A DNA stretch of 64,000 nucleotides. It comes from Laetmonice hystrix (Eukaryota). The translations under genes and the position numbers were made by a program. Of the stretch, positions 5,861 through 32,700 are shown piece by piece (the stretch's first letter is position 1; every line of letters begins with the position of its first letter). A model generated the notes under the pieces. It was given only the letters and a program-made list of their open reading frames with translations, did not search any database and was not told the DNA's origin. The DNA lies in NCBI GenBank assembly GCA_965235115.1, contig OZ249438.1, positions 40,238,001 to 40,302,000 of the forward strand, in the 5' to 3' direction.

Positions 5861-5895
5861 TACGCCTAGTGTGTTTGGTCATATTGAAATTACAT

Positions 5896-9556: not shown

Positions 9557-12500
9557 ATGGAGCGTTCTCAGGGCCCAGATTACGTGAACACCAGAGACAA
9601 CGTCTATCACGACATCAAATCACCAGAGTCAGTGTCGGAATATGAAGGATATCTTCAAATCCAGCCTGAACTACCCCCTGGCCGCGAACGCACACCTCCA
9701 AATCATGTCACAGGCCTCGTTGTGGCAGAGACGGAGCGTTCCGTGACGTCACGTGGGAGGCGGGCGCCGTGGTGGGCCGTCACGCTCATCGTGATTGGTG
9801 TACTGTTACTTGCTGCCCTCATCGTCATCATCATCCTTATCGTCGGTGAGACATCCTGACAATGTCGATCACTTGTTTCTGGTCAGGGAATGCTTGACGT
9901 GAAGGGAATGTTGCCTTGATGTTTGGTTGAAGGTCATACTCGGTCTATGTTAACGGAAGGGAATGGGTCAGCCTTTAGACCGTTTATTATGTCATTAAAG
10001 GACCAGTGCAGGCCTATTCCTTTGAATGCTGTGTTGGCCCGTGCTGTAAGTCTACATCCGCACAAAACATAGATCCCCACATCAATTACGTGCATTTTTA
10101 ATGTGATATCAATATGGCTACAGGTGAGCCGGCTTGGGCCGGATATCCAGGGGGCGCCACCCTCTTCGACACGAATACACTGGTCCTTTAAACGAGCCCA
10201 ACAGTCTTTAAGGAATGGAGAAATAAACAAGCTTAGAGGAGATCACTAAATAAAAGCCTACGCAATGTTTGCTGTTTAAGTGTAGGCGTAATTTACTCGG
10301 GCACTGTGACTGGACGAACAAACCAACATTAATGAAGTGTTTTCCCTTCCACCCGGTGTCTGTTTAAAGATGGACCCCTGTCGAAGACAGAGAGGCCGAC
10401 CACACATAGGCCTACAGGTAAGGTCGCATCTATAGACCGAGAGTTAGTTTACTTCAGAAGGGTTTGGGTGGAACCCCGTACCCCCTGGATATGATGCCGT
10501 TGTAGGGCTACATAAAGTCTCCACCCTGAAATGATGTTGATCTATAGGCCTACATGTCTCCACCCTGATATGATGTAGATCTATAGGTCTACATGTCTCC
10601 ACCCTGATATGATGTTGATCTATAGGTCTACATGTCTCCGACCTGATATGATGTTGATCTATAGGTCTACATATCTCCACCCTGATATGATGTTGATCTA
10701 TAGGTCTGCATGTCTCCACCCTGATATGATGTTGATCTATAGGTCTACATATCTCCACCCTGATATGATATTGATCTATAGGTCTACATGTCTCCACCCT
10801 GATATGATGTTGATCTATAGGCATATACATGTCTCCACCCTGATATGATGTTGATGTGTACATGTCTCCACCCTGATATGATGTTGATTCACTCCAGGCC
10901 TCACCGAGGATGATGTTCACAAGGGGGTGACTACCCCCAGTTTACAGCCGTCCGCACCCCCCGAGGCCGACTATAACTGTAAGTGTCAATCTGGACCCCC
11001 AAAATATTTTTTTACTGCACTTGATCCTCCCGAAGAAATAAAGTGGATTCTACGAAGTTACTTCCCCACATTAGATGCGTGTTTGTGGTAAAACCCGTTA
11101 AGTCACAGGCCAAACCTGTCAAACTACTCTGATGTAAAACTAAAGTTTGGACTTTGCAAACCCACCATCCCACGCCAGACTCTGACATCCGTATGGCTTG
11201 TGTGTGTGTGGTCGAAATTGTCGATATCTTCAACACTTCAAAACAACTTCCGACATAGTGCTACAATGTCATACATGTTGACTATTTTAGCGACCGAGAC
11301 CTTCAGTGACCATTTCACCATGACGTCGGGAACGGGAACTAATGGATTAACTAACGTCCAAGTCTCGGCCCAAACTGCTGACGCCTGTAAAAAACGATGC
11401 GTTCTCAACGACCAGTTCTGTTACGGAGTCGACTTTAACCAAAACGCCTTAAAGTGTTGGTTGATCATGATACCCAACTACCGTGTACGGCCAATAGGTA
11501 GCGCCCCTTCCTTCACCAACTATAGACGCAGTTTGGCCGTCAGAGATGGTAAGTGTGGCGGCTACAATCATGACAAAAATACTTGATTTCACGATAGAGT
11601 GGAATTAGTCATTCAGAAATTCTTACAATTGAGATCATCCCAAAGATGTGTATGAGTCATGCAGCCAGCGTTCCGCCAGAGGGTAAAATGGGTAAAATTC
11701 CGTACCCTACGATTTTTCCAGGGTACGGATCCGTGCCCTCTAAACCGTCGGGTAACCATTTTTCCATGAAGTGATAAAAACCTCCTGATGATGCCTTGAG
11801 CAACTTGAAGGAATCAAATATAATGCAGTACAGTATATGCAGGCTTTCTTTGGTTAATTCACATATTTGTAACAGCAGTTAGGGTTAGGCTAACCCTAAC
11901 CCTAACCCCTCCTCTGGTCCGTACCCTAAATTTTGTTTCTGGCGGAAACCATGGCAGCCTATAAAATAACGGGGGGGGGGGGGGGGTTACAGCATATTCG
12001 TCAAAGATTGCCGGCCAATGGGTGAGCTCTGCGGCCACCAATGGTTTGACCACAGGCAGCCAGCTACCGGCCACTGTCACTGAACCTATACACACTGATT
12101 TGAATGATGGGCCCCTTATTATCCAGTATTGAGTCACACTTTCATAGATGTAGTTATTATTAATCTACATGTTAAGCCCCCTTTACTCACGCGATACTCT
12201 GGTTTAGTCACACTTTTATAGATGTAGTTATTATTAATCTACATGTATAGCCCCCTTTACTCACGCGATACTCTGGTTTAGTCACACTTTTATACATGTA
12301 GTTATTATTAATCTACATGTATAGCCCTCTTTACTCACGCGATACTCTGGTCTAAGTTTCATGTCGTGTAGAGCTGCTGACTGTACCTGGAAAACGAATT
12401 ATTGGAGACCACGTGACGATACGATCAGCGGTCAACACGCCGGAGCAATGTTCCAATCTCTGTCTCGGTGACCGTGGGGATGGCGTGGTCGGACCTGGAC

Positions 12501-15500
12501 GGTTCTGTTCGGCAGTGCTCTTCATACCGAGTAATGCGACAAATAGTAAACAGTGCCATATTAGCACTAGCCAGTACTACCTTACATCAAGAACGAACAG
12601 ACAAGATATTAGATTTCAAGAATTGCGCTTAGTTTGCAGTAAATCGTCATACCCGGGTAAGTAGTAGTCTATACAAACATTATAATTATATGTCCTGCTT
12701 CAGAGATAGTCCGGACAAGCGTTTCTTTCATGAGCAGATTCTCCTATCAGTTTCTGGTATGGAGTCTTCACGATCCCTTTATTGCCTGATCCCCTCAACG
12801 TCATATAGCCAGAGAGTGTACTAAACCAGCGGCTTCCGCCGCCTATGTAAACTCTCTGATATAGCCAATGCCGAAACCGGAAATAACAAGATGGACTACT
12901 TCCGCTTTGTGAATGCAATATCGCAGTCACAACAAGCGAACAAACTTGAACTAGTCATAGATCATAATCCATCCATAAATCTCAAGCAAAACACATTCTC
13001 TTGTTGGAGTTACATGTGGGTAAATGTATTAGGGTGGCATATTACCATTTCAGGATGTAGGTACCCATTTCAGAGGCGAGCCAAATATAGGATGCGTGAA
13101 AGATCCGCGGGACTAAAAAAGGAGGACGTCCCTGGTCAGACGGTTGGCGCATGCGCAGAGCGCTGTATTGGTCGTGACCCGTCTTACAAAACGCAATGTC
13201 GTGTCTTCGAATTCAACAGATCAAACAGGACATGTACTATATACATGAACACAGCGGAAAGAGCAAGACTAAGGGTTTCAGAAACTCCACTCATCGACAT
13301 CTACGAACTACCGGAAACATCTATAGACTGCAGTAAGCGTTTGAGACTGTCAAATGGGGGATTTTACTCGAATCTGATTGGTTAAGATGTATTTCAAGTC
13401 AATTAAATTTGATGTGGCTTCTGAATCGGTTCAAGACGCACCCCTGCTGTCTCAGGGACAAGCTCTATTTAAGCAATCACTGTTGATCGGCGCACGGAGA
13501 TTTTGTGAACATACAAATATATTACAAATAAATCTGTCGGGTATTCACCTACGTGAATATGACCAGTGACCTTATAACTATCTCTTCTTGCCGTCGAAAG
13601 GTAAAAAATGCCAAGAACAGGCAGGTGTGTATCAGTACCTAACCTTAAGAATTAAATGTATTCATTTACTTCACTTATTGGATGTCCCTTTCCTCCTTCT
13701 GTAGGTCCATGTATGGACCACTACAAGGCGTGGTATGACGCCAGGAGTGTGGGCAGAAGAAAACTGCAAGGGAAGTTTGTCTCCGAGTCCTGCAAACGGC
13801 GCTGTGTCAGGTATAAAGGTCGCTCTGACCGTCCAAGGGTAAAAGTTGACGAGATGTTAGATCTCTTCGGGCGAGTCCGCCGAGCGACTCTCAACTTTAC
13901 TGCCATTGCTCAGAGTTTGGTCAATGAGACGGTTGGAAGATGTTTCGGGTATGATATCACCCCGGACGGAGAATGTTACTTCAAAACTGAGGCCAGTTAC
14001 ACGTTAGAGAACGCTGTCGGCAACATGCACTTCAGTCGGCAGCCGCTCTGTGGTGGTGAGATGTTTGGGGGTTTTATGGGGTTGTTCTATTTCTACTTTG
14101 TGTGGTCGCAGGTTTGTAACTGACAGAGAGACAGAGAGCACAGCCTCTAACGGTAGAGGGACCGAACCCAGAATTTCATAAAGCAAGGGATAGGGAGGGA
14201 TAGATGACGCAGAGGTCAAGTTATTAAAGAAATTGGTACAAACCAAAGATATAAGAACTGCATGGCCCTAAAAGGGGAGAACCTGTGTTTATTTACATAA
14301 TAATGTGTGTTTTCTGTACAGAGACAGTTACCGTAGCTAGACAGCAATAGGTCCCGTACCTAACCATATAATATCGCCGTAAAGATGACCTTATACATGC
14401 CGACACAGCGGAAAGCCACACTCACACTCTCACTGTTCCTGTACAGGTTGTGGCGACCAGACCCAGTACACATCCACGGTCAACACTTGGCCCCCTGGCG
14501 GTGTAACTTTCTCTAGTAACCAGACCAGTTCCGTCTTCATGTGCGCGTCCCTCTGCCAGGGGGCGCTCGTTACGTTTACGTCGGCGCCGTGCTACGGGTT
14601 CGCCTACGACACACGACGGGGGACGTGTACTTTGTACCGGTCCTTCAGCTACGAACTGGGCCCCGTGGGGAGGGCCCCGTATGTCAACCACTACCGCCGC
14701 ATGTATACATGCCGTGAGTCTCATACTGTCTCACTAGGGTTCGGAGGAAGGGGAGGGAGAGGTATGACTCTAAAGGGGCAACAGGGGCGGATTTAGGGGG
14801 AGGCCGAGGGGGCCGCCTCCCTTCCGTCAGGGTACCAATCAGACAAAAGGCAAAATTTGTTGTCCACAACTGTAAAAGCAAACATTTTGCTTTCTCAGAA
14901 TGCAGGAAATGCCATTTCAGAGACGCTAGATGTTCAAAATTGTCTGAGGGCATGCCCCCAGACCCCGCTAGCAGGGCTCGGGCTTCGCCCTCAGGCGACC
15001 CCCCCCCCCCTCCCTTTCCAAAATTCTGGATCCGCCCCTGGGCAATAAACATCTCTTTGAGGTTAGGCTTTGTCCCCAAGAATTGAGGGTTGACATGGCT
15101 TCTGTCCATCTGACTGAATCTGGTGAGAAAAGTATAACTTTATCACTGCACTATATTACTATCGCATTTTAAAAGTAATATTGCCAATGGGGGACGAACT
15201 CCTAACCTCCAAAAATATTATTGTCATTCAGTGCATAGTGTGTGAACGGATCCCAACGGGCACGGGCAGAGCTGTTTGGATGCAGAGCATGGATTCATTG
15301 ACGTCCTTTTTCTCTGTGTTTATGTGACAGCTTCGGCAAGGTGTCTGGAGAGCTTCACAGTGACACGGAACATGAGGGGACAGGGCCGAGTCCCGCTACC
15401 AGTTGATATCGACACGATCGACAAGTGTAAGGACCAATGTCTCGGTTACCACATCGCCACGTTTGGGGGCGCCACCTGCTATGGATTCTCCTTCGACAAC

Positions 15501-15647
15501 CAGCGGACCCGTTGCCATGTCTACGTGGACAGACAGAATTCTTTGCCAACGCGAAGAGTACCAGATGTTGATACCTATCAGAGGAATATGCGCTGCTCTG
15601 AACTCACAACAACTGTTAGAGATGGAATGGATGACAAATTATTATAA
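9557..15647 (+). CDS. Paralog 1: type II transmembrane protein, Tyr-motif cytoplasmic tail + 6 PAN/Apple domains, 686 aa; join(9557..9845,11291..11548,12357..12656,13054..13332,13705..14055,14447..14713,15331..15647)
   Basis: All introns are GT-AG and phase 1; the total is 2061 nt, in frame, ending TAA. Kozak gccaagATGG with an in-frame stop 18 nt upstream. TM WWAVTLIVIGVLLLAALIVIIILIV follows RGRR. Each downstream exon has the PAN pattern C-x3-C...C-x-G/A/V-F-x-F/Y...C. The exon 3 acceptor could alternatively be 12372. Confidence 0.88.
10517..10890. repeat. 39-bp minisatellite in intron 1, ~9-10 units
   Basis: Unit tctccaccctgatatgatgttgatctataggtctacatg; present in all three paralogs. Confidence 0.95.
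11666..11953. mobile_element. CAG...-type MITE with 5-bp TSD (GCAGC), hAT5-like; shared with paralog 2 (21846-22126), absent in paralog 3
   Basis: gcagc|cagcgttccgccaga...tctggcggaaaccatg|gcagc; the empty site tcatgcagcctataaa is seen at ~32658. Confidence 0.8.
12133..12354. repeat. 74-bp x3 tandem repeat directly upstream of the exon 3 acceptor, paralog 1 only
   Basis: gtcacactt... at 12133, 12207 and 12281; single copy in paralog 2 (~22357-22430). Confidence 0.9.
14782..15040. mobile_element. CAG...CTG MITE with 5-bp TSD (GGCAA) in intron 6; also at 25356-25613 and 35574-35831
   Basis: ggcaa|caggggcggattt...ggatccgcccctg|ggcaa; present in all three paralogs, so it predates the triplication. 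Confidence 0.8.
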
Positions 15648-18042
15648 TCGTATGAGATGTTTTAATGGCGAGGCTGTCGTATGTTAGAACATGCTCCCAG
15701 CCACCTAGTGTCGTATTTAATAACTAAGACTGTCCTATGTTAAAGCAGAGCCCAGTGTCCGTCAGATGGACCATCTGATCGCTTAACGCTTAACGAAATA
15801 AAAAAAAGAATTTCATAAAAGGCTCATGTTTTTGAGAATTTTCCAGTTCCATCTGTTGGTGTTGGGAGGGGGCGTGAATGGGTTGATGGTCGGGAACTTG
15901 TGACGAGGTATTTGGAATATGTTTCTACATTTGCAACATGTAGGCCTAAAGAGAGCGCTGTACATTTCCTCCATTATATACGAGTAATGCTATAGGCTAG
16001 CCTGGAGTGGCTCTATAGGGCTAACACTATGCCTCATGTTACGGTCACCATTGATTTAGAAAAGAAATACAAACTATTGATTGACCCGATGCTCCCAGGT
16101 AGGCCTAGACATCTATAGCCTGCATAATGGGCCTACATCTAGTCACGATAGGTGTCACCTACGGGGGAGGTGGCGCCCCCTGTGGGCAATACAAAATCGC
16201 GCTTTGTCAGACTGGTTCTCGATCCCGTCGCTAGGTGGCTAGAATATTTAGACACCTAGCGACTGGATCGGGAACTACTCTCTGTGGTCTCAAAACTGAT
16301 CATTCGGGATTCCCTCGGGCATATGACGTCATTTCTGCATATACCCTCGGGTGACTTGGGCGCCATTATGGCAACAGATAGGCCTACATGGCGAAATCGA
16401 CCTGTGTAGCGAGGCACTGAGTGAACCGTCATATCCCATCGAGCCAGAAAGTAGTGCATTATTGAAACCTGCTCCTTGGCATCGTATGTGCAAATATCGG
16501 CCTAAATTTGTGGTATGAAGGGGAACGTTTGAAGAAGAAAAAGAATCACCTAGCTAATTTAGGAACAACAACGCTGCTTCTGATTGGCTGTTTCTAGGTC
16601 ATATCCGGAGGCGAAAGAGGCCACGGATCTATGAAGCGGCCATTTCCCCAAGATTTGCGGAAAATCCAGTGAAGTGGCATCGCGCATGAACACAGCAGTA
16701 AATAGGCCTAACAAGGGTGTAGCCAGGAGGGGGGGGGGGGGTCCAGGTTGCCTCCCCCCAAATAATTAATAGCTAATTAAATAACTAAATAGATCTAAAT
16801 AAATTACTAATATTATGGTTGGGAATCCCCCCCGCCATCTCAGTTGGAACTGATGTGGTAACTGATCGCTAGAAGTCCATTGCTGGTCGAGAAAGAACAT
16901 AACCATTGACCCTATTTCAGCCACTAAAAATTGCCTAGGGGGCCTACTTGGCTTCCGAGTCCCAGCAGTTGTTTTTCGTATTCCTCCAAGTTATGGTTTT
17001 TGTAATTTTTTTTTCTCAGGGATCATTTCACAGCTGTCAACCCTTAGAATGTGCTAACAGGGCCAAGAGAAAAAACATTTAGTGTTTATAACAGTGTTTA
17101 TAACTAGACCTAGGCCTATATATTTAGTTTAATATAATAACGGTGGCGCAGACAGTCCATAGGGAGCTAAGAATGCCCTTTTACTGAGAGGCGGCGGGGA
17201 TCACTGAATCATGCTTTATTGGGATCAGATTTGAAAAGTTCTCAGTTTTTCTCAGGCCGCCTCGTCGGCCTATACTGGTTTCACGACACTACTGACCTCT
17301 GGTGGTGAAATCTAGACCTGAGTTGAGACTCTCTCCGCCACCTAGTGTGGTAAACGTGAAACTGGGTGTGTTTCTCAGTCACTTAGCTTGATGTCGGCAG
17401 TGGGTCATGGGTCCCGGGAAAATACTCTGAGAAGTCAAGGTTCTTAGGCAGGGGTGGGTCCAGGGGGTCCGGACCCCCTGCTCCCAGAGAGCATTGATTT
17501 TTTTCTAAGCATTCCCGCCGTTTTGAACCCGTTGAGCTATTTTTTTCTAAGCATTCCCTCTGAAGGTGTCCCTTGCTAAACGGGGGGGGGGGGGGGGCAC
17601 AGTAGCGTCCGCACAAGAAATAAGTAACCCAGTGAGCATCTGCTAGTAGCGTCAGATGTGTAGGTGTTTGCGTGACGGTCTATTTCACAGACCCGCTACC
17701 ATTGAGGACAGAGGAACGGGCCATGGAGACGACTGCCAGGTACGTCTGTCAGCTTGCTCTCCTGTCAATCGTACGGGCGCAGTTTGTTTGTCACTATTAG
17801 ACAACAGTGGGCGATCCAGGGGGCGGGGGCAAGATTTTGATAATGGAGGGGGGGGGGGGACCAGGATTTTGATAAGGAGGGCACCTAAATCTAAATTTGA
17901 TTGTTAGTTTGAGTGTCCTCACACATGAAGTAGTCCAACTGAAGACTAAGTCAAGCGAGACGCTTGTATAACAGAATCGTGATATTGTCGCCACGGTCGG
18001 TGATGTCTTTGCGTTCACTGCGCGCGTAGAACATCTGGTTAA

Positions 18043-18570
18043 AGGGGCATACTATGAAACACGTTTTTGAGGATTTCCGGCAATTATCCAAAATGACCGT
18101 GTACTAGGGATCCAAGTAAATAATCCTACCACAGCATTTTGTCCTCCGACGTGTTTTCGCTGCGTATGCAGCACCAGTAGGTTCTATACGACCAAACCTA
18201 TAGATTTCTCCTGATAGCACATCTCCCGCCATAATTTGGCGGACAACCTCCCATCAACCCGTGTAATTGCATACTGTGTCACATCCTGTGTGTGCACTCT
18301 CTGCATGTGCTTAGTCACGTGCTTTGCTTAGTCGTAAACAATTCAGCAGTGGCACTCGATCGCCCGGCATCAGAATGCCACCCAAAAAATATTTTACGAA
18401 ATCGGCAGAGAAGCGGGCAAGGGAGCTTAATAAACTTCGATTTCTCACGCAAAATGAAACTGATAAGTCTGTCTTTGTTTACCAAGCAATTTTAATGAAG
18501 GATCTCTTTATGAAAACAGCAAAAGTTCTATGAAATACCGATTTTTAACGTTTCCTCATAATATGCCCCT
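18043..18570. mobile_element. Kolobok-like non-autonomous element (528 bp), TTAA TSD
   Basis: TTAA|aggggcatactatga...tcataatatgcccct|TTAA; 14/15 TIR match; AG...CT termini. Confidence 0.8.
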
Positions 18571-19443
18571 TTAAAAGTGGAGTATTAGACCTAATCATTG
18601 CCATAGGAAAGGGGAAGGGGATGCCCCCCCCCCCAATTAAAGGGTAAGATTGATGGAAGCATATTCCTATCCTGTTAGTCTGACTCACTCACCCCCCCCC
18701 CCCCACACACCCCTACATACACCCACACACACCCCAGATAGCTTCCTCTGCCTGTGTTAATTACATCACGATTACTTAATCAGAATCTCCCAATCCTGAG
18801 AAAAACGCTACACTTCTCGTCAAATCGCGCATTGTAACGGTGACTTTGACGCTTTTTGGTAAAGTCAAGAACGGCCGCTTTGATAGTGTTACTAGATCTA
18901 TAGTCTTCCCTCTCAGGAAGGCTCGTCTAGGGTTAGATCTACCATGGCTGCCCCCCCCCCCCTCCCCGAACTTGATAGGCCAAAGTCTCAAAGCCGGTGT
19001 AACAGGTTTCCGTCGTCCCCCTGGGATAGGCCTACAGGTGATGGAACTGCAGTCTCCGAAATAAAGGTCCGACGGACCTGTAGGCCTATTTCTATAGGGA
19101 CTAAAGTCAGTCATAGACTATTGTACTATTTTATTTCCATAATCCTAACAGAAATCCTCACCTTGACCCTAATCCATATGAAGGCCCTATTTTCTTAATT
19201 ATATTTTCTTTGGCCTAGACTCATTCCAGCGGACTTAGATCTAGGTACATTCCTTTTCACCTGTTCTTGGCATAGTCTATTTCTGTTACCGAATACCTCG
19301 CCTATAGGAAGGCCTATAAAGGAACACTAGGACCATTATAATTCCTGCCTACACCTTTTAAAAAATTCATTCATTCATGTACATTTGTGTAGATATCTAT
19401 TTATTTAAGGGTGGCAACTACTCCATAAATTCCCGCTGCCAAG

Positions 19444-22400
19444 ATGGAGCGTTCTCAGAGCCCAGATTACGTGAACAGCAGAGACAACGTGTATGACGAC
19501 ATCAAATCACCAGAGTCACCAGTGTCGGAATATGAAGGATATCTTCAACTCCAACCTGAACTACCCCCTGGCCGCGAACGCACACTTCCAAATCATGTCA
19601 CTGACGACGACACGAAGCGGGAGAAGGGATATCAAGGCCTCGTTGTGGCAGAGACGGAGCGTTCCGTGACGTCACGTGGGAGGCGGGCGCCGTGGTGGGC
19701 CGTCACGCTCATCGTGATTGGTGTACTGTTACTTGCTGCCCTCATCGTCATCATCATCCTTATCGTCGGTGAGACATCCTGACAATGTCGATCACTTGTT
19801 TCTGGTCAGGGAATGCTTGACGTGTAAGGGAATGTTGCCTTGATGTTTGGTTGAGGGTCATACTCGGTCTATGTTAACGGAAGGGAATAGGTCAGCCTTT
19901 AGATCGTTTATTATGTCATTAAAGGACCAGTGCAGGCCTATTCCTTTGAATGCTGTGTTGGCCCGTGCTGTTGTGTACATCCGTACACAACATAGCTCCC
20001 CACATCAATTACGTGCATTTTTAATGTGATATCAATATGGCTATAGGTGAGCCGACTTGGGCCGGATATCCAGGGGGCGCCACCCTCTTCGACACGAATA
20101 CACTGGTCCTTTAAAGGGAGGGAAACCCCACACAGCAAATAAGGTTTCGTAGACCAAATGAAACACCAGCGTCACACATCGGGTGGTTACACGTTAATTA
20201 CTTCATTCAAACAACGTAATTGTGGCATTTATTGCCCTGGTGTAAATGCTGGTGTTTCATTTGGTCTACGAAACCTTATTTGCCGTGTGGGTTGTCCATC
20301 CCTATAAACGAGCCCAACAGTCTATAAGGAATGGAGAAATAAACAAGCTTAGCGGAGATCACTAGATAAAGGCGTATACCAATCTACGCATATGAAATGT
20401 TAGCTGGTTATGTGTAGGCGTAATTTACTCGGGCACTGTGACTGGACGAACAAATCAACAATAATGAAGTGTTTTCCCTTCCACCCGGTGTCTGTTTAAA
20501 GGTGGACCCCTGTCCAGGACGGAACCGGAGAGTCAGACCACACATAGGCCTACAGGTAAGGTCGCATCTATAGACCGAGATGGTGAGTTTACTTCATAAG
20601 GGTTTGTGTGCAACCCAGTAACACCCTGGATATGATGCCGTTGTAGGGCTACATAAAGTCTCCACCCTGAAATGATGTTGATCTATAGGTCTACATGTCT
20701 CCACCCTGATATGATGTTGATCTATAGGTCTACATGTCTCCGCCCTGATATGATGTTGATCTATATGTGTACATATCTCCACCCTGATATGATGTTGATC
20801 TATAGGTCTACATGTCTCCGACCTGATATGATGTTGATCTATAGGTCTACATATCTCCACCCTGATATGATGTTGATCTATAGGTCTGCATGTCTCCACC
20901 CTGATATGATGTTGATCTATAGGTCTACATATCTCCACCCTGATATGATATTGATCTATAGGTCTACATGTCTCCACCCTGATATGATGTTGATCTATAG
21001 GCATATACATGTCTCCACCCTGATATGATGTTGATGTGTACATGTCTCCACCCTGATATGATGTTGATTCACTCCAGGCCTCACCGAGGATGATGTTCAC
21101 AAGGGGGTGACTACCCCCAGTTTACAGCCGTCCGCACCCCCCGAGGCCGACTATAACTGTAAGTATCAATCTGGACCCCCAAAATATTTTTTTACTGCAC
21201 TTGATCCTCCCGAAGAAATAAAGTGGATTCTACGAAGTTACTTCCCCACATTAGATGCGTGTTTGTGGTAAAAACCGTTAAGTCACAGGCCAAACCTGTC
21301 AAACTACTCTGATGTAAAACTAAAGTTTGGACATTGCAAACCCACCATCCCACGCCAGACTCTGACATCCGTATGGCTTGTGTGTGTGTGGTCGAAATTG
21401 TCGATATCTTCAACACTTCAAAACAACTTCCGACATAGTGCTACAATGTCATACATGTTGACTATTTTAGCGACCGAGACCTTCAGTGACCATTTCACCA
21501 TGACGTCGGGAACGGGAACTAATGGATTAACTAACGTCCAAGTCTCGGCCCGAACTGCTGACGCCTGTAAAAAACGATGCGTTCTCAACGACCAGTTCTG
21601 TTACGGAGTCGACTTTAACCAAAACACCTTAAAGTGTTGGTTGATCCTGATACCCAACTACCGTGTACGGCCAATAGGTAGCGCCCCTTCCTTCACCAAC
21701 TATAGACGCAGTTTGGCTGTCAGAGATGGTAAGTGTGGCGGCTACATGACAAAAATACTTGATTTCACGATAGAGTGGATGGGATTAGTCATTCAGAAAT
21801 TCTTACAATTGAGATCATCCCAAAGATGTGTATGAGTCATGCCGCCAGGGTTCCGCCAGAGGGTAAAGTGGGTAAAATTCCGTACCCTAAATTTTTTCTA
21901 GGGTACGGATCCGTGCCCTCTAATCCGTTGGGTAACCATTTTTCCATGAAGTGATAAAAACCTCCTGATGATGCCTTGAGCAACTTGAAGGAATCAAATA
22001 TAATGCAGTACAGTATATGCAGGCTTTCTTTGGTTAATTCACATATTTGTAACAGCAGTTAGGGTTAGGCTAACCCTAACCCCTCCTCTGGTCCGTGCCC
22101 TAAATTTTTTTCTGGCGGAAACCCTGGCAGCCTAGAAATATATTCGTCAATATTCGTCAACGATTGCCGTGACCACAGGCAGCCAGCTGCCGGCCACTGT
22201 CACTGAACCTATACACACTGATTTGAATGACGGGCCCCTCATTGGCCAGTATTGAGCCAACCCCCACCGCTAACGGGACCCCGCCCCGGGCTGACGTAAA
22301 CGCGGACAGACTGTGAAAGGTCACTCAGATACAGTGCAATCACCACCCCCTATTCAGAGTCACACTTTTATACATGTAGTTATTATTAATCTACATGTAT

Positions 22401-25400
22401 ATCCCCCTTTACTCACGAGATATTCTGGTTTAAGTTTCATGTCGTGTAGAGCTGCTGACTGTACCTGGAAAACGAATTATTGGAGACCACGTGACGATAC
22501 GATCAGCGGTCAACACGCCGGAGCAATGTTCTAATCTCTGTCTCGGTGACCGTGGGGATGGCGTGGTCGGACCTGGACGGTTCTGTTCGGCAATGGTCTT
22601 CGTACCGAGTAATGGGACAAATAGTAGACAGTGCCATATCAGCACTAGCCAGTACTACAGCACAGCGAGAACAAACAGACGAGATATTAGATTTCAAGAA
22701 TTGCGCTTAGTTTGCAGTAAATCGTCATACCCGGGTAAGTAGTCGTCTATACAAACATTATAATTATATGCTCTGCTTCAGAGATAGTCCGGACAAGCGT
22801 TTCTTTCATGAGCAGATTCTCCTATCAGTTTCTGGTATGGAGTCTTCACGATCCCTTTATTGCCTGATCCCCTCAACGTCATATAGCCAGAGAGTGTACT
22901 AAACCAGCGGCGGCGGAACAGATAATATATTGGGGGGGGGGGGCACTTCCGCCGCCTATGTAAACTCTCTGATATAGCCAATGCCGAAACCGGAAATAAG
23001 ATGGACTACTTCCGCTTTGTGAATGCAATGTCTCAGTCACAAAAAGTGAACAAACTTGAACTAGTCATAGATCATAATCCATTCATAAATCTCAAGCACA
23101 ACACATTTTGTTGTTAGAGTTACACGTGGGCCAAATGTATTACAGTGGTATATCACAATTTCAGGATGTAGGTACCCATTTCAGAGGCGAACCATGCATA
23201 GGATGAGTGATAGATCCGTGAGACTAAAAAAGGAGGACGTCCCTGTTGAGACGGTTGGCGCATGCGCAGAGCGCTGTATCGGTCGTGACCCGTCTTACAA
23301 AACGCAATGTCGTGTCTTCGAATTCAACAGATCAAACAGGACATGTACTATATACATGGCCACAGCGGAAAAAGCCACTCCAAGACCAGGGGTTTCAAAA
23401 ACTCCACTCAACATCGACATCTACATACTACCGAAAACATCTATAGACTGCAGTAAGCGTTTGAGACTGTCAAATGGGGGATTTTACTCGAATCTGATTG
23501 GTTAAGATGTATTTCAAGTCAATTAAATTTGACGTGGCTTCTGAATCGGTCCAAGACGCACCCCTGCTGTCTCAGGGACAAGCTCTATTTAAGCAATCAA
23601 TGTTGATCGGCGCACGGAGATTTTGTGAACATAAAAATATATTACAAATAAATCTGTCGGGTATTCATATATATGACCAGAATATGACCAGTGACCTTAT
23701 ATCTATCTCTTCTTGCCGTAGAAAGGTAAAAAATGCCAAGAACAGGCAGGTGTGTATACCTAACCTTAAGAATCGCTGTGCCGAATTACAACCTTTAAAG
23801 GCAGGGTAAACACCCACGGCAAATAAGGTTTCGTAGGCCAAATGAAACATCAGCATTTACCTCAGGGCAATAAATGCCACAATTACGCTGTCTGAATGAA
23901 GTAATTAACGTGTAACCGCCCGATGTATGACGCCGCTGGTTCTTACCTTGACCTTCTTGTGTGTTCATCACAACCGAATGCTGCACACCGCAGCCTATTG
24001 TGTAACATTACGTGTTACTCTGTTCACAGACCTTGTCTACACGATGTTTGGAGTCCTAACGTTTGTAAACGTCCGAGGTGTTGAACACTAAAAGCAGAAC
24101 CAGTTGCATCACACATCGGGCAGTTACACATTAATTACTTCATTCAGACAACGTAATTGTGTCATTTATTGTCCTGGCGTTTCATTTGGCCTACGAAACC
24201 TTACTTGCCGTGGGTGTTTACCCTGCCTTTAAATGTATTCATTTCCTTCACTTATTGGATGTCCCTTTCCTCCTTCTGTAGGTCCATGTATGGACCACTA
24301 CAAGGCGTGGTATGACGCCAGGAGTGTGGGCAGAAGAAAACTACAAGGGCGGTTGGTCTCGAGGAGCTGCAAACGGCGCTGTGCCTGGTATAACGGTCGC
24401 TCTGACCGTCCAAGGGTGAACGTTGACGACATCTTAGACCTCTTCGGGCGAGTCCGCCGAGCGACTGTCAACTTTACTACCATTGCTCGGAGTTTGGTCA
24501 ATGAGACGGTTGGAAGATGTTTCGGGTATGATATCACCCCGGACGGAGAATGTTACATCAAAACTGAGGCCAGTTACACGTTAGAGAACGCTGTCGGCAA
24601 CATGCACTTCAGTAGGCAGCCGCTCTGTGGTGGTGAGATGTTTGGGGGTTTTATGGGGTTGTTCTATTTCTACTTTGTGTGGTCGCAGGTTTCTAACTGA
24701 CAGAGAGACAGAGAGCACAGCCTCTAACGGTAGAGGGACCGAACCCAGAATTTCATAAAGCAAGGTCCGAGAGGGATAGATGACGCAGAGTTTAAGTTAT
24801 TAAAGGAATTGGTAGAAACCAAAGATATAAGAAATGCATGGCCCTAAAATGGGAGAACCTGTGTTTATTTACATAATAATGTGTGTTTTCTGTACAGAGA
24901 CAGTTACCGTAGCTAGACATCAATAGGTCCCGTACCTAACCATGTAATATCGCCGTAAAGATGACCTTATACATGGCGACACAGCGGAAAGCCACACTCA
25001 CTCACTCACTGTTCCTGTACAGGTTGTGGCGACCAGACCCAGTACACATCCACGGTCAACACTTGGCCCCCTGGCGGTGTAACGTTCTCTAGTAACCAGA
25101 CCAGTTCCGTCTTCATGTGCGCGTCCCTCTGCCAGGGGGCGCTCGTTACGTTTACGTCGGCGCCGTGCTACGGGTTCGCCTACGACACACGACGGGGGAC
25201 GTGTACTTTGTACAGGTCCTTCAGCTACGAACTGGGCCCCGTGGGGAGGGCCCCGTATGTCAACCACTACCGCCGCATGTATACATGTCGTGAGTCTCAT
25301 ACTGTCTCTCTAGGGGTCGGAGGGGGGAGGGAGAAATATGACTCTAAAGGGGCAACAGGGGCGGATTTAGGGGGGAGGCCGAGGGGGCCGCCCCCCTTTC

Positions 25401-26212
25401 GTCAGGGTACCAATCAGACAAAAGGCAAAATTTGTTGTCCACAACTGTAAAAGCAAGCATTTTGCTTTCTCAGAATGCAGGAAATGCCATTTCAGAGACG
25501 CTAGATGTTCAAAATTGTCTGAGGGCATGCCCCAGACCCCGCTAGCAGGGCTCGGGCTTCACCCTCGGGCGACCGCCCCCTCCCCCCTTTCAAAAATCCT
25601 GGATCCGCCCTTGGGCAATGAAAATCTCTTTGAGGTTAGGCTTTGTCCCCAAGAATTGAGGGTTGACATGGCTTCTGTCCATCTGACTGAATCTGGTGAG
25701 AAAAGTATAACTTTATCACTGCACTATATTACTATCGCATTTTGAAGTAATATTGCCAATGGGGGACGAACTCCTAACCTCCAAGAATATTATTGTCATT
25801 CAGTGCATAGTGTGTGAACTGATCCCAACGGGCACGGGCAGAGCTGTTCTCTCATGGATTCATTGACGTCCTTTTTCTCTGTGTTTATGTGACAGCTTCG
25901 GCAAGGTGTCTGGAGAGCTTCACAGTGACACGGAACATGAGGGGACAGGGCCGAGTCCCGCTACCAGTTGATATCGACACGATCGACAAGTGTAAGGACC
26001 AATGTCTCGGTTACCACATCGCCACGTTTGGGGGCGCCACCTGCTATGGATTCTCCTTCGACAACCAGCGGACCCGTTGCCATGTCTACATGGACAGACA
26101 GAATTCTTTGCCAACGCGAAGAGTGCCAGATGTTGATACCTATCAGCGGAATATGCGCTGCACTGAACTCACAACGACTGTTAGAGATGGAATGGATGAC
26201 AAATTATTATAA
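19444..26212 (+). CDS. Paralog 2: type II TM protein with 6 PAN/Apple domains, 701 aa; join(19444..19768,21471..21728,22435..22734,23165..23452,24282..24632,25023..25289,25896..26212)
   Basis: Same exon structure as paralog 1; phase-1 GT-AG introns; 2106 nt in frame with no premature stop. Confidence 0.88.
20115..20303. mobile_element. Kolobok-like hairpin MITE (189 bp), paralog 2 intron 1 only
   Basis: TTAA|agggaggg...aataaggtttcgtagaccaaatgaaacaccagc...gctggtgtttcatttggtctacgaaaccttatt...catccct|ATAA; empty site cctttaaacgagc at ~10186. Confidence 0.8.
20658..21070. repeat. 39-bp intron-1 minisatellite, paralog 2, ~10-11 units
   Basis: Same unit as 10517-10890 with a nearly identical variant order. 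Confidence 0.95.
23799..24228. mobile_element. Kolobok-like MITE (430 bp), same family as 20115-20303, paralog 2 intron 4 only
   Basis: TTAA|aggcagggtaaacacccacggcaaataaggtttcgtaggccaaatgaaac...tttcatttggcctacgaaaccttacttgccgtgggtgtttaccctgcct|TTAA; empty site caacttttaaatgtattc at ~34465. Confidence 0.85.
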
Positions 26213-26891
26213 TCGTATGAGATGTTTTAATGGCGAGGCTGTCGTATGTTAGAACATGGTCCCTGCCACCTAGTGTCGTATTTAATAACTAAGACTGTCC
26301 TATGTTAAAGCAGAGCCCAGTGTCCGTCAGGTGGACCATCTGATCGCTTAACGCTTAACGAAATAAGAAAAAAGAATTTCATAAAAGGCTCATGCTTTTG
26401 AGAATTGTCCAGTTCCAATCTGATCCACCTATTGGTGTTGGGGGGGGGGACGAGAATGGGTTGACGGTCGAGAACTTGTGACGAGGTATTTGGAATATGT
26501 TTCTACATTTGCAACATGTAAAGAGAGCGCTGTACATGTATAATGTTTCCTCCATTATATACGAGTAATGCTATAGGCTAGCCTAGATAGGCTCTATAAG
26601 GCTAACACTATGCCTTATGTCACGGTCACCATTTATTTAGAAAAGAAATACAAACTATTGATTGACCCGATGCTCCCCGGTAGGCCTAGACATCTATAGC
26701 CTGCATAATGGGCCTACATCTAGTCACGATAGGTGTTACCTGGCGTGATGGGGGAGGTGGCGCCCCCTGTGGGCAATACAAAATCTCGCAATACTTCGCT
26801 TTGTCAGACAGGTTCTCGATCCCGTCGCTAAGTGGCTAGAATATTTAGCCCGGTTTTGGCAAGGTTAGCATGATCTTAACTTAAGCTCTGC

Positions 26892-26970
26892 TTAGCCTTT
26901 TAGGACCCCTGATTGGCTGGTTGAAGCTGAGCAGCAGAGGAGCAGCCAATCAGGGGTCCTAAAAGGCTAA
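26892..26970. repeat. Perfect 28-bp inverted repeat with a 23-nt loop, probably the core of a MITE
   Basis: ttagccttttaggacccctgattggctg (26892-26919) and cagccaatcaggggtcctaaaaggctaa (26943-26970). Confidence 0.85.
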
Positions 26971-28171
26971 TGGCGTCTCAGAGCTTCTAATTTAAAAAAA
27001 ATCCTGAGACCTCCCCCCTGCTGAAAATTCTGGACACACGCCTCAGTGTTAGGGTTCGTTCCCCTTTGTTGGTAGGCCCTATAGGGTCCTATTATTTTCA
27101 GCTGTAATGGATCTAGATCTGCGCTTAATTGATAAGATCTCAAAGAAAGGGCTCCGACAAGTTACGTTATCATCAAGGATGGAGTGCAGTTTGGTCTCTC
27201 AACCATTAGTTAGAGCCATCACGACATAGCACAGCTCCCCGGACTTACATTATTAGTATTAGTGATCTTGTTGTACGCAAGTACCCAACAATATAACAAC
27301 GATACCTCGACATTGTGTGGAGATGTAGGCCTATTCAGGGCCTAGTTCGTAAAAACATAAAGCAATCAGCGAGTATCTCTCATTTCAATGACTCCAAAAT
27401 GCAGACATGGGATGTTAGGTTAGAAAAGGCCTCACACTACATAATTCAATAAATGTTCACCCACAGAAATAAAGAAATCTAATGAAATTCAACATTCCCG
27501 TTGACGCCATGAAGCGAACAGCTCATGGCTGGTTGTTGACCAGGCATTGACTTGAACAGCCAATGAAATTCATCGGTTCTTCGCCTGATTAACGCTTCTG
27601 ATTGGCTGGTCAGAGAGGACCAGCCAATCCAACGCATATAGCGTCTCAACAGAAATAGATCTAGGCCTAGTTCAGCAAGCGGTGTCCTCGTTACCCATAC
27701 GCCCCTGCGGCTTACCCAGGACCCCGTGCAGGATCTCTAAGCAGTCATTTCAGCAAATGGGCGCGATCTGCGTTCCAATATCTATGAGCGTTCATTTCAG
27801 CAAATGGGCGCGATCGTTAGCGTGACCCGAGTCTAGATCTATCCATTATTATTTATGGGCTACCACTTCCAGTATTCATGCAGCTTTTCTGAATTTGTGA
27901 CGTCATAGCTCCATGACGTTATACGTCATATGAACTTATTAGTCATAGGCAGATTAGGGAAGGTGAAAATACACCCATGCATCACAATTTCCCATTAACC
28001 CAGTTGGGATAACTAGGCCCACCTCTAGTTTAAAAAAGATTGATGTCACTCGATCCAACAACTGTGGGTCTCTGAAGGCGCTCGTTGCCAAAACGGGTGG
28101 GCGGGGGCAAAGTAGCCGTCGCGCAAGGAAGTAGGCCTACATGTCATCCAAGGAACATCTGCCAGTAGCAT

Positions 28172-28742
28172 CAGATGTGTAGGTGGTTGTGTAGATGTGT
28201 AGGTGCCAGTCTGTCACACAGACCTGCCACAGTTAGGCCTACAGTGAGGACGTGGTCCTGTGTCTGGTAGATGTGTAGGTGGTTGCGTGCCAGTCTGTCA
28301 CACAGACCTGCCACAGTTACAGTGAGGACGTGGTCCTGGGTCTGGTAGATGTGTAGGTGGTTGTGTGCCAGTCTGTCACACAGACCTGCCACAGTTACAG
28401 TGAGGACGTGGTCCTGTGTCTGGTAGATGTGTAGGTGGTTGCGTGCCAGTCTGTCACACAGACCTGCCACAGTTACAGTGAGGACGTGGTCCTGTGTCTG
28501 GTAGATGTGTAGGTGGTTGCGTGCCAGTCTGTCACACAGACCTGCCACAGTTACAGTGAGGACGTGCTGGTCCTGGGTCTGGTAGATGTGTAGGTGGTTG
28601 TGTGCCAGTCTGTCACACAGACCTGCCACAGTTACAGTGAGGACGTGCTGGTCCTGGGTCTGGTAGATGTGTAGGTGGTTGCGTGCCAGTCTGTCACACA
28701 GACCTGCCACAGTTACAGTGAGGACGTGGTCCTGGGTCTGGT
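28172..28742. repeat. 78-bp (some 81-bp) minisatellite, ~7 units, upstream of paralog 3
   Basis: gtctggtagatgtgtagg... at 28262, 28340 and 28418; single diverged homologs at ~5120-5200 and ~17655-17720. Confidence 0.93.
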
Positions 28743-29758
28743 GGGACCTTCGCCCGACTATGGAGACGACTGGCACTTGAACAGGTACGTCTCTCAGCTT
28801 GCTCTCTTGTGGATCGTGGGGCGCTGGATGTTGGCGATCTTTTTAGGAGGTTTTGTTTTGCACGATTAGATACACAAGGTAGTATACTGCATTCAGGTAT
28901 AACTGATTTTAAGTTAATACATTATAATTATTATGTAAAATTCGTGCCACTCAGATAAACCTATATCTATTAATCAACGGGTTGATTTATGTGCACACAT
29001 ACTCATGGCTTCGACAAAAATATAAAAGAGAAAGTTTTTTTGTGACAGAACTTTGTTTGGACAGTTCGTGTCCGGGTTGATTCATGCCAGTGCAGTGTTA
29101 ATGCGCTAGCTCGGAGGGAGACTGATTCCTCACACATGAAGTAGGCCTAGTCCGAGGACTTAGTCAACCGAGACGCTTGTATAACAGAATCGTGATGTTG
29201 TCGCCACGGTCGGTGATGTTATTACTTTCGTATACCATTAACTGGGCGCGTAGAGGCATGTTAAATGGAGTATTAACCAGAGGCGTAGTAAGAGGGGATG
29301 ACCCCCTCAATACAAAGGAGGGTAAGATTAATGTAAGCATATTCTTATCCTGTTAGTCGGACTGATGTGCCCCCCAACTGAAGATAGCTTCCTGTGTTAA
29401 TTATAGGCCTACATCACGATTACTTAGTCAGGATCTCCTAGTTCTGAGAAAGGCAGATCATATCCTGCTATGGCCTGACGTCTGGTTGAATCTGTCTGTT
29501 TGACACCGAGTTCACCAATACAAACTTGACGCTAATCTTCCATCAATCTCGTTTAAAACACTGCTCAACAAGTTCATCTCAGCAGTGGCATAGCTACCGG
29601 GGGCGGCAGACTGCCCCCTGGAAGTATTTTGGTCGGGAAACTGAACCGGGAAAAAGAAGCCTTATTGCATATCGCCTTCATTCACTAGGTTTTACTCTAA
29701 TGCGATAGAATTGCTTCTAATCAGTGTGGCAACAACTCTATAAATTCCCGCTGCCAAG

Positions 29759-32700
29759 ATGGAGCGTTCTCAGGCCCGAAATGACGTGAACAGCAAAGAG
29801 AACGTTTATGAGGATATCAAATCACCAGAACCACCCGTGTCGGAATATGAAAGATATCTTCAACTCGAGCCAGAGCATGCCTACCACAACGCTTCACCTA
29901 AACTTCCCCCTGCCCGCGAACGCACACTTCCAAATTATGTCACTGACGACGACACGAAGCGGGAGAAGGGATATCAAGACCTCGTTGTGGCAGAGACGCA
30001 GCGTTCCGTGACGTCACTTAGGAGGCGGGCGCCGTGGTGGGCCGTCACGCTCATCGTGATTGGTGTACTGTTACTTGCTGCCCTCATCGTCATCATCATC
30101 CTTATCGTCGGTGAGACATCCTGACAATGTCGATCACTCGTTTCTGGTCAGAGAATGCTTGACGTCTAAGGGAATGTTGCCTTGATGTTTGGTTGAGGGT
30201 CATACGTAAACGGAAGGGAATGGGTCAGCCTTTAGATCCTTTATTATGTCATTAAACCAGCCCAACATTAAGGAACGGAGAAATAAACAAGCTTAGAGGA
30301 GATCACTAGATAAAGGCCTATGCCATATAGGCCTACGCATATGAAATGTTTGCTGTTTAGGTGTAGGCGTAAGTTAATCGGGCACTGTGACGAAGAAATC
30401 AACGAAGAAATCAACAATAATGAAGTGTTTTCCCTTCCACCCGGTGTCTGTTTAAAGGTGGACCCCTGTCCAGGACGGAACCGGAGAGTCAGACCACACA
30501 TAGGCCTACAGGTAAGGTCGCATCTGTAGACCGAGATGGTGAGTTTACTTCATAAAGGTGTGTGTGCAACCCCGTAACACCCTGGATATGATGCCGTTGT
30601 AGGGCTACATAAAGTCTTCACTCTGAAATGATGTTGATCTATAGGTCTACATGTCTCCACCCTGATATGATGTTGATCTATAGGTGTACATGTCTCCACC
30701 CTGATATGATGTTGATCTATAGGTGTACATGTCTCCACCCTGATATGATGTTGATCTATAGGTGTACATGTCTCCACCCTGATATGATGTTGATCTATAG
30801 GTGTACATGTCTCCACCCTGATATGATGTTGATCTATAGGTGTACATGTCTTCGCCCTGATATGATGTTGATCTATAGGTCTACATGTCTCCGCCCTGAT
30901 ATGATGTTGATCTATAGATCTACATGTCTCCACCCTGATATGATGTTGATCTATAGGTCTACATGTCTCCGCCCTGATATGATGTTGATCTATAGGTCTA
31001 CATGTCTCCACCCTGATATGATGTTGATCTATAAGTGTACATATCTCCACCCTGATATGATGTTGATCTATAGGTCTAGGCCTACATGTCTCCACCCTGA
31101 TATGATGTTGATCTATAGATCTACATGTCTCCGCCCTGATATGATGTTGATCTATAGGTCTACATGTCTCCACCCTGATATGATGTTGATCTATACGTCT
31201 ACATGTCGCCACCCTGATATGATGTTGATTCACTCCAGGCCTCACCGTGGACGATGTTCACAAGGGGGTGACTACCCCCAGTTTTCAGCCGCCCGCACCC
31301 CCCGAGGCGGACTCGTCTGTCTATAACTGTTAGTATCAATCTGGACCCCCCCCCCCCCCCAAAAAAAAAGAAGTGGATTCTACGAAGTTACTTCCCTATA
31401 TTAGATGCGTGTTTGTGGTAAAACTAGTTAAGTCACAGGCCAAACCTGTTAAACTTGTCAGTGTGCTCTTTACAAGCCCACCATCCCACGCCAGAATGTA
31501 CACTCTAACGCTGGTATGGTTGGTACTTGTGTGTGTTCTGAGAGGTAAAACTAAAGTTTAGACTTTACAAGCCCACCATCCCACGCCAGAATGTAGACTC
31601 TAACGCTGGTATGGCTGGTACTTGTGTGTGTTCTGAGAGGTAAAACTAAAGTTTAGACTTTACAAGCCCACCATCCCACGCCAGAATGCACACTCTAACG
31701 CTGGTATGGTTGGTACTTGTGTGTGTTCTGAGAGGTACAACTAAAGTTTAGACTTTACAAGCCCACCATCCCACGCCAGAATGTAGACTCTAACGCTGGT
31801 ATGGCTGGTACTTGTGTGTGTTCTGGGAGGTAAAACTAAAGTTTAGACTTTACAAGCCCACCATCCCACGCCAGAATGTAGACTCTAACGCTGGTATGGC
31901 TGGTACTTGTGTGTGTTCTGAGAGGTAAAACTAAAGTTTAGACTTTACAAGCCCACCATCCCACGCCAGAATGTACACTCTAACGCTGGTATGGCTGGTA
32001 CTTGTGTGTGTTCTGAGAGGTAAAACTAAAGTTTAGACTTTACAAGCCCACCATCCCACGCCAGAATGTAGACTCTAACGCTGGTATGGCTGGTACTTGT
32101 GTGTGTTCTGAGAGGTAAAACTAAAGTTTAGACTTTACAAGCCCACCATCCCACGCCAGAATGTACACTCTAACGCTGGTATGGCTGGTACTTGTGTGTG
32201 TTCTGAGAAGCGGTGAAATTTTCACATATTCAGCCACTTTGGGTTGAAAGATCAAAAATTGCCGATACACTTCAAAACAACTTCCCACATAGTGCTAAAT
32301 GTTGATTATTTTAGTGACCGAGACCTTCAGTGACCATTTCACCATGACGTCTGGAACCAGGACACTGCGAGTACCTAACGTCCAAGTCTCGGCCCAAACT
32401 GTTGACGTCTGTAAGAAACGCTGCATTCTCAATGACCAGTTCTGTTACGGGGTCGACTTCAACAATAAGACTGGAAAGTGTCGGCTAATCATTACACCTA
32501 ACTACCGCGTACGGCTAATAGGTAGCGCCCTTTTTTTCGACAATTACAGACGAAGTTTGGCCGTCAGAGAAGGTAAGTGTGGCAGCTACATGAGAAAAAA
32601 AGAGTGGAATTGGTCATTCAGAAATGCATACAATTGAGATCATCTCAAGGATATGTATGAGTCATGCAGCCTATAAAATAAAGTGTGTGGGGGCTTTATG

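Follow-up and report, generated by a model that had tools for sequence, protein, structure and literature searches.

Long-spacer ITAM-like tyrosine motifs in the predicted cytoplasmic tails of a tandem PAN/Apple gene family in Laetmonice hystrix

Three tandem genes in the window

We analyzed a 64,000-nucleotide stretch of the Laetmonice hystrix genome (the window; G000:C3:40238001-40302000) that contains three tandem copies of a gene for a putative PAN/Apple receptor. [quoted passage not shown] We found an ITAM-like pair of YxxL/I motifs in each tail, and pairs of the same kind in two distant paralogs elsewhere in the genome with tails that otherwise cannot be aligned to those in the window. 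Genome-wide searches described below were taken over the 627-Mb genome.

Three tandem repeat units of approximately 10 kb each lie between 9.4 and 37 kb of the window. The units are 90-97% identical to each other in pairwise comparisons, introns included, and each contains one intact gene; together the three genes span window positions 9557-36430. Each gene has eight coding exons, with open frames, AG/GT splice sites in all copies, and every intron in phase 1. Gene models were built from open frames and from GT-AG sites kept in all three copies, and were then corrected with the contigs of run X4. The models of copies 1 and 3 were mapped from copy 2.

9557-15647, plus strand: gene copy 1, 702 amino acids; coding exons 9557-9845, 10370-10417, 11291-11548, 12357-12656, 13054-13332, 13705-14055, 14447-14713, 15331-15647
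19444-26212, plus strand: gene copy 2, 719 amino acids; coding exons 19444-19768, 20502-20555, 21471-21728, 22435-22734, 23165-23452, 24282-24632, 25023-25289, 25896-26212
29759-36430, plus strand: gene copy 3, 726 amino acids; coding exons 29759-30110, 30458-30511, 32315-32572, 32948-33241, 33720-34007, 34524-34874, 35241-35507, 36114-36430

Run X4 is not labeled as RNA, and we treated it as RNA-like because it covers exons and has GT..AG joints. Away from repeats, the introns of copy 2 were uncovered and the exons were covered. GT..AG joints were found in copy 2 at 19768/20502, 20555/21471 and 24632/25023, together with a loose end from 25289 into 25896, and a single contig of 1,192 nucleotides (nt) spanned the last three coding exons. 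The tail exon of copy 2 is expressed, because X4 contigs matched it (19429-19767) with no mismatches. The acceptor of the fourth coding exon was placed 15 nt further upstream on X4 evidence, and the joints defined a short exon that encodes a stalk just after the transmembrane (TM) helix.

20502-20555, plus strand: mini-exon of copy 2, 54 nt, extracellular stalk just after the TM helix; supported by X4 joints, AG/GT sites kept in all copies
10370-10417 (copy 1, 48 nt) and 30458-30511 (copy 3), plus strand: counterparts of the mini-exon, AG/GT sites kept

Predicted architecture and topology

Each protein consists of an N-terminal tail of 71-92 residues, a single TM helix, a short stalk, and six cysteine-rich modules. 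In the alignment of the copies, the initiating ATG has a Kozak-like context and is preceded by an in-frame stop six codons upstream. The N-terminus is hydrophilic and has no signal peptide, and the sequence RGRRAP immediately precedes the sole hydrophobic segment. All 34 cysteines and all six N-glycosylation sequons are C-terminal to the TM helix, and the tail has no cysteine. AlphaFold2, run with an alignment of the five family members, predicted the TM segment as a confident helix (residues 73-95; predicted local distance difference test score, pLDDT, 81-94) and residues 1-70 without any structure (pLDDT approximately 50), indicating that the tail is probably disordered. Because there is no signal peptide, RGRRAP precedes the single TM helix, and all cysteines and sequons are on its far side, we read the proteins as type II, with the N-terminus inside and the PAN modules outside. 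This in silico topology, together with the disorder prediction, agrees with the earlier proposal that the N-terminus is cytoplasmic, and would place the tyrosine motifs in the cytoplasm.

Of the six ectodomain exons, five matched the Pfam domain PAN_1 (PF00024). The scores of three exceeded the 21.4-bit cut-off, and those of the other two (20.6 and 16.1 bits) fell short of it. The remaining one, the fifth coding exon, had no Pfam match; its cysteine spacing is PAN-like, with an insert. Weak similarity to the HGF N domain was also seen. The PAN_1 matches and the cysteine pattern place the proteins among the PAN/Apple proteins.

Two other properties of the ectodomain were observed. The last two PAN modules (14447-15647, 25023-26212 and 35241-36430) have zero to two residue differences among the copies and PAN1-4 differ at many sites, a pattern suggesting that the 3' half underwent gene conversion or that the membrane-proximal (N-terminal) modules have diversified. 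X4 gave no coverage of the PAN3 exon of copy 2 (23165-23452), in contrast to the other copy 2 coding exons examined. This gap may reflect alternative splicing or merely thin coverage; skipping of the exon would keep the frame because all exons are in phase 1.

9770-9844 (copy 1), 19693-19767 (copy 2) and 30035-30109 (copy 3), plus strand: TM helix, from the DNA alignment and AlphaFold2

The preliminary description had noted that the DNA encoding the TM helix appears identical in the three copies, and we found no mismatches over these 76 nt. The 58 nt upstream are nearly identical as well, and the 107 nt of intron downstream have 1-5 differences among the copies. Because the adjoining intron is also nearly identical, the identity of the TM-encoding DNA points to local gene conversion or recent origin rather than to selection on the TM helix alone.

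Tyrosine motifs in the three tails

A motif pair of the form Y[HDE]DI-x11/12-YLQ[IL] is present in each of the three tails, in a region that is acidic (11-17 D/E per tail). The tails differ in their other tyrosines.

9557-9845, plus strand: tail exon of copy 1; Y9VN, Y17HDI (9605-9616), 11-residue spacer, Y32LQI (9650-9661)
19444-19768, plus strand: tail exon of copy 2; Y9VN, Y17DDI (19492-19503), 12-residue spacer, Y33LQL (19540-19551), Y63QGL (19630-19641)
29759-30110, plus strand: tail exon of copy 3; D9, Y17EDI, 12-residue spacer, Y33LQL, Y42HN (29882-29890), Y60, Y72QDL
9605-9661, plus strand: ITAM-like pair of copy 1; shuffle P = 0.004
19492-19551, plus strand: ITAM-like pair of copy 2, with E-Y-E-G before the second motif; shuffle P = 0.007
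29807-29866, plus strand: ITAM-like pair of copy 3; shuffle P = 0.010
9581-9589 (copy 1) and 19468-19476 (copy 2), plus strand: Y9VN, a YxN motif; the codon in copy 3 (29783-29785) is GAC (Asp)
19602-19634 (copy 2) and 29944-29976 (copy 3), plus strand: 33-nt in-frame segment that includes the larger part of the third YxxL motif; copy 1 lacks it (junction 9711/9712)
Within 29870-29902, plus strand: 27-nt in-frame extra segment of copy 3 that carries Y42HN; from the alignment, placement ambiguous by 6 nt
29936-29938, plus strand: extra Tyr60 of copy 3 (NYVT); TAT, versus CAT (His) in copies 1 and 2

The alignment confirmed the sequence features reported in the preliminary description: the motif pairs and their spacers, the acidic context, the 33-bp indel, the TAC to GAC change, the YHN segment, and the tyrosine in NYVT. 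The YQDL of copy 3 is at 29972-29983. DNA contigs of copy 1 placed on copy 2 skip 19602-19634, and copy 1 is also without one 3-nt codon (P26).

We estimated how often such motifs would arise by chance from 100,000 composition-preserving shuffles of each tail, scored for the pattern Yxx[LI]-x6-12-Yxx[LI]. For the three window tails, the probability of the pattern was 0.004-0.010 and that of the observed number of YxxL/I motifs was 0.002-0.02. The three copies are recent duplicates and were counted as one observation, not three.

Conservation among the copies

Within the tail exon, divergence is highest over the N-terminal two thirds of the tail, with 4.5-13.5% nucleotide differences and three indels, all in frame. 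Synonymous divergence (dS) between the copies was 0.05-0.15, and the ratio of nonsynonymous to synonymous divergence (dN/dS) among the three copies was 0.54-0.92 for the tail and 0.44-0.72 for the ectodomain (Nei-Gojobori). From 17 to 20 of approximately 75 tail codons have changed, and by chance all four key residues would stay unaltered about 1 time in 3. Because the copies are young and the tail is nearly neutral, retention of the motif among them carries very little weight. The earlier statement that every paralog retains the motif is accurate for the presence of the pair in the three copies, and weak as evidence for its function. For the same reasons, the copy-specific gains and losses of tyrosines may equally be drift.

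The 33-nt segment was most likely deleted in copy 1, since the most similar pair is copies 1 and 2, yet the segment is common to copies 2 and 3. The YHN motif had been called new. It is indeed on a 27-nt segment found only in copy 3 among the three, but the segment may be ancestral: a distant relative, paralog A (below), has a similar stretch, P-Q-H-A, at the place aligned to it.

Two distant paralogs with paired motifs

We searched the whole genome in six frames, using the tail/TM exon first and a profile built from it second. Only five family members were found: the three copies in the window and two distant paralogs.

C3:21.96 Mb, minus strand: paralog A, from the genome search
C7:13.83 Mb: paralog B, from the genome search; tail region G000:C7:13827483-13827869

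Both paralogs have the exon design of the window genes: the ATG closely follows an acceptor, and the TM helix is directly followed by a phase-1 donor. Six collinear PAN exons follow downstream, 25-50% identical to the window proteins. Outside the TM helix, the tails of A and B aligned to the window tails no better than shuffled sequences (z = 0.6-2.2).

The paired motifs were nevertheless present in these otherwise unalignable tails. The tail of paralog A reads MEDSHQ-YDDI-x11-YTAI-x9-YEHI, with D-E-D-P before the middle motif, and that of paralog B reads RDN-R-YTSL-x14-YQRL-x9-YLHL. The shuffle probabilities were 0.010 for the ITAM pattern and 0.005 for the number of YxxL/I motifs in paralog A, and 0.021 and 0.0014, respectively, in paralog B. 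All five family members of this genome thus keep tyrosine pairs, at shifting positions. The broad ITAM pattern of two YxxL/I motifs 6-12 residues apart was found in every tail, with spacers of 11 (copy 1), 12 (copies 2 and 3), 11 and 9 (A), and 9 residues (B). Counted by eye in copy 2, A and B, the residue at +3 is L or I for 10 of 19 tail tyrosines and F, M or V for none of the 19. One-to-one homology of individual tyrosines was considered and rejected, as the five-tail MAFFT alignment and pairwise global alignments disagree.

We accept the motif as real mainly because the pairs persist in the A and B tails; recurrence of this kind in randomized tails is what a functional short linear motif within a disordered region usually leaves behind. 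Two further motifs in the tail of paralog B are RPLPAPP, which fits the class I SH3-ligand consensus, and VNYQRL, which fits that of an immunoreceptor tyrosine-based inhibitory motif (ITIM).

Candidate SH2 readers in the genome

Genes that might read such motifs were sought by scanning the genome for Pfam SH2 domains and for tyrosine kinases, and loci were then inspected. A gene at C10:15.73 Mb encodes an SH2 domain, ankyrin repeats, a second SH2 domain, and PK_Tyr in that order, which is the architecture of Shark. Among the loci inspected, this order was found only at C10. No canonical Syk without ankyrin repeats was found among the inspected SH2/kinase loci, which does not exclude its presence.

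The Shark-type gene is present twice, in inverted orientation and 4.5 Mb apart (C10:15733001-15743000 and, at 11.25 Mb, C10:11249001-11266000). At the protein level, most exons in the comparison show 97-100% identity, and two ankyrin/SH2 pieces are 82-90% identical. A duplication in the very recent past, or else duplication in the assembly, would account for the second locus.

The best tandem-SH2 locus in the search for Syk, at C1:49.03 Mb, was set aside as a gene with two SH2 exons that we take to be Csk-like, read by eye against human sequences. Its two SH2 exons are similar and adjacent, approximately 400 bp apart, and lie upstream of one kinase domain (G000:C1:49029435-49030260); they may be duplicated or mutually exclusive exons. 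By the same comparison by eye with human sequences, we presume that the gene at C30:0.57 Mb is SHP2-like, those at C7:12.94 and 14.5 Mb PLC-gamma-like, that at C8:14.13 Mb Abl-like, and those at other loci Shc-, RasGAP- or SH2B-like.

Other features of the window

In every copy, the intron right after the mini-exon contains a 39-nt tandem repeat that varies in copy number (10400-10972, 20541-21152 and 30497-31270); long open reading frames on both of its strands are repeat artefacts. A 63-nt minisatellite of approximately 30 copies (7243-9412) is directly upstream of copy 1. Further minisatellites are at 825-2303 (65 nt), 31373-32337 (95 nt), 48913-49839 (78 nt) and 55524-58700 (82 nt).

Two other open frames are outside the tandem genes. 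The frame at 46342-46755 begins with a signal-peptide-like segment, followed by a cysteine pattern that we take to resemble the N-terminal MNNL domain found in Notch ligands of the Delta/Serrate type. This frame probably represents exon 1 of a neighboring gene. The frame at 5650-6480 (276 amino acids) presumably resembles the C-terminal part of a reverse transcriptase of the long interspersed nuclear element (LINE) type and is probably a retroelement remnant.

Comparison with known receptors

The two tyrosines of the Draper ITAM (Y934 and Y949) are separated by an 11-residue spacer. The pattern given for Draper in the literature is YxxI/L-x6-12-YxxI/L (PMC6219719) and, when phosphorylated by Src42A, the Draper ITAM binds the tandem SH2 domains of Shark (PMC6219719; PMC4503800). 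Like Draper, the worm proteins have a long-spacer, non-canonical ITAM in the receptor's own tail, plus non-ITAM tyrosines. The reader of Draper is a Shark-type SH2-ankyrin-SH2 kinase, and the worm genome contains such a gene. In contrast, Draper is a type I protein with EMI, NIM and EGF repeats, an NPxY motif, and a C-terminal ITAM, whereas the worm proteins are predicted to be type II, have PAN/Apple modules, and carry the motif close to their N-terminus. With their PAN ectodomain, and with NPxY in no tail, they are not members of the Draper/CED-1/MEGF10 group. The term "Draper-type" in the preliminary description therefore fits the spacer, which falls within the Draper pattern, but not the proteins, which are not Draper homologs; the resemblance is in the motif only. 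As regards the motif and the candidate reader kinase, the earlier analogy is fair.

The hemITAM, DED-G-YxxL, is found in type II receptors of the Dectin-1 cluster (CLEC-2, Dectin-1 and CLEC9A; PMC3576117). These receptors share with the worm proteins a type II topology, a short N-terminal cytoplasmic tail, and tandem-duplicated gene clusters. They also share acidic residues and a small residue at -1 before YxxL, as in E-Y-E-G-YLQL of the window and D-E-D-P-YTAI of paralog A. They differ in having a C-type lectin-like rather than a PAN/Apple (PAN_1) ectodomain, and one YxxL rather than the at least two YxxL/I of the worm tails. The worm motif also departs from a hemITAM in the strict sense, one YxxL preceded by an acidic residue at each of positions -4 to -2: the window tails have E, Y and E at -4, -3 and -2 and an upstream YxxI, and D-E-D at -4 to -2 occurs only in paralog A. 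The vertebrate hemITAM receptors are the nearest counterparts in topology and local context.

Two other receptors are relevant. The oyster receptor CgIgR has an ITAM in its own tail and binds CgSyk (PMC6994640). It is, like the worm proteins, a lophotrochozoan surface receptor with its ITAM in its own tail. It differs in being type I, with five Ig domains, a classical ITAM, and demonstrated binding, whereas the worm proteins are type II PAN proteins with a long spacer that are known from sequence. ASGR1, a type II endocytic lectin, has a YQDL endocytosis signal near its N-terminus (PMC7404283). ASGR1 and CLEC10A resemble the worm proteins in being type II with an N-terminal tyrosine motif, and the YQDL of ASGR1 is the third motif of copy 3. 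They differ in having a single endocytic motif, a C-type lectin ectodomain, and no paired YxxL/I.

Interpretation of the tyrosine motifs

Taken together, these results suggest a lineage-restricted receptor family that signals via phosphotyrosine by an ITAM/hemITAM-like route, a reading that we hold with moderate confidence. Binding of a ligand would cluster the receptor, and a putative Src-family kinase would phosphorylate the tail tyrosines. The first motif has Val at -1, an acidic surround, and the sequence Y[DE]DI, which resembles pYEEI, the preference of Src-family SH2 domains. The doubly phosphorylated pair would recruit a tandem-SH2 kinase, for which the Shark-type gene is a candidate. 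The remaining tyrosines (YxN, YQGL/YQDL) may be docking sites for accessory adaptors or act in internalization. In support of this reading, the ITAM pattern (P = 0.004-0.02) and the number of YxxL/I motifs (P = 0.001-0.02 per tail) are unlikely by chance in three independent lineages (window, A and B).

The interpretation in the preliminary description is thus partly supported: an ITAM-like pair appears to be real and family-wide, and a Shark-type gene is in the genome. The Syk/Shark output that it proposed as common to the copies is putative. Its further proposal, that the copies differ in their adaptors (Grb2 at YxN, others at YQGL/YQDL), is speculation. The copy-to-copy differences in tyrosines are real in sequence and their functional meaning is only putative.

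Several observations weigh against the ITAM-like reading. The canonical ITAM spacer is 6-8 residues, and that of the window copies is 11-12. In paralog B, the two motifs with the best alignment to those of the window stand 27 residues apart, so the motif positions are fluid rather than strictly conserved. The dN/dS of the tail, 0.5-0.9, indicates weak overall constraint and almost neutral change. A phmmer (HMMER) search with the tail/TM exon of copy 2 against 1.84 billion representative proteins found no true homolog. It gave four matches (E 2e-6 to 5e-5); three were inspected and are TPR or low-complexity repeats (GNVYDDLG type), and the best match, P0001 (4,292 amino acids, E 1.9e-6), was outside these three. 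Finally, the sorting consensus of AP-2 also has the form YxxL/I, and YQDL is established as an endocytic signal in a type II receptor (PMC7404283).

This last point underlies the main rival, that the YxxL/I motifs are YxxPhi sorting signals that bind AP-2 mu2 when unphosphorylated, by which a scavenger- or lectin-like PAN receptor would be endocytosed either constitutively or in response to ligand. A type II receptor with tyrosine motifs near its N-terminus has a precedent in ASGR1, the endocytosis motif of which is identical to the YQDL of copy 3 (PMC7404283). Enrichment of YxxL/I would be equally expected for sorting, and a function served by a single motif would tolerate the fluid positions. 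AP-2 needs only one motif, yet every family member keeps two to four, each with at least one pair at ITAM spacing. At +3, each of the 10 motifs has L or I, never F, M or V. Both the strongly acidic surround and DED-x-YxxI in paralog A are reminiscent of kinase-substrate and hemITAM contexts (PMC3576117). We consider sorting alone a real but rather unlikely explanation. The two functions are not mutually exclusive and may coexist; we tilt modestly towards phosphotyrosine signaling because pairs at ITAM spacing recur, +3 is only L or I, and the surround is acidic and kinase-substrate-like.

It is also possible, and in our view improbable, that the tails signal via phosphotyrosine without a tandem-SH2 kinase of the Syk/Shark type. 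The tyrosines would then be independent docking sites for single SH2 domains, for example of a Src-family kinase at Y[DE]DI, Grb2 at YxN, and SHP2, Shc or PLC-gamma at YxxL, and the ITAM-like spacing would be incidental. The long and variable spacers (9, 11, 12 and 14), the extra tyrosines, and the likeness of Y[DE]DI to the pYEEI class are consistent with this, as are VNYQRL and RPLPAPP in paralog B and the presence in the genome of SH2 genes that we presume to be SHP2-, PLC-gamma-, Shc- and RasGAP-like. Against incidental spacing, the pairing recurs in all three lineages at low shuffle probability, the genome has a Shark-type gene, and the 11-residue spacer of Draper works with Shark. The literature on Draper gives Y949 and the x6-12 pattern (PMC6219719; PMC4503800).

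That the motifs have no function, with the tail a weakly constrained spacer and the pattern a product of chance and shared ancestry, would fit the tail dN/dS, the three in-frame indels within a dS of approximately 0.15, and the failure to find a homologous tail among the 1.84 billion proteins outside this genome, but it is very improbable given the enrichment, the persistence of pairs in the randomized A and B tails (product of shuffle probabilities approximately 1e-6), and the expression of the tail exon.

Significance

Outside the vertebrates, signaling from an ITAM to Syk or Shark is known from very few receptors: Draper in the fly and one Ig receptor in the oyster. The family described here may be a new receptor scaffold (PAN/Apple, type II) for a known kind of signaling motif, with a tail the like of which was not found among the representative proteins searched. 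We tentatively suggest, as a possibility on the doubtful side, that a lineage-restricted worm immunoreceptor family, type II and tandemly clustered with an acidic tyrosine motif on its N-terminal side, independently built a Dectin-1-like design on a PAN/Apple recognition scaffold, connecting a long-spacer ITAM to Shark-type kinases, and that its young copies are diverging in their YxN and YQxL docking sites. If the motifs are only endocytic, the family would be an ordinary, rapidly duplicating group of lectin-like surface receptors. If the tail signals through an ITAM, annelids would have a new receptor scaffold for the ITAM pathway, convergent with the vertebrate Dectin-1 cluster, and the three receptors and the Shark-type kinase would be candidates for the study of target recognition by immune or phagocytic cells of the worm.

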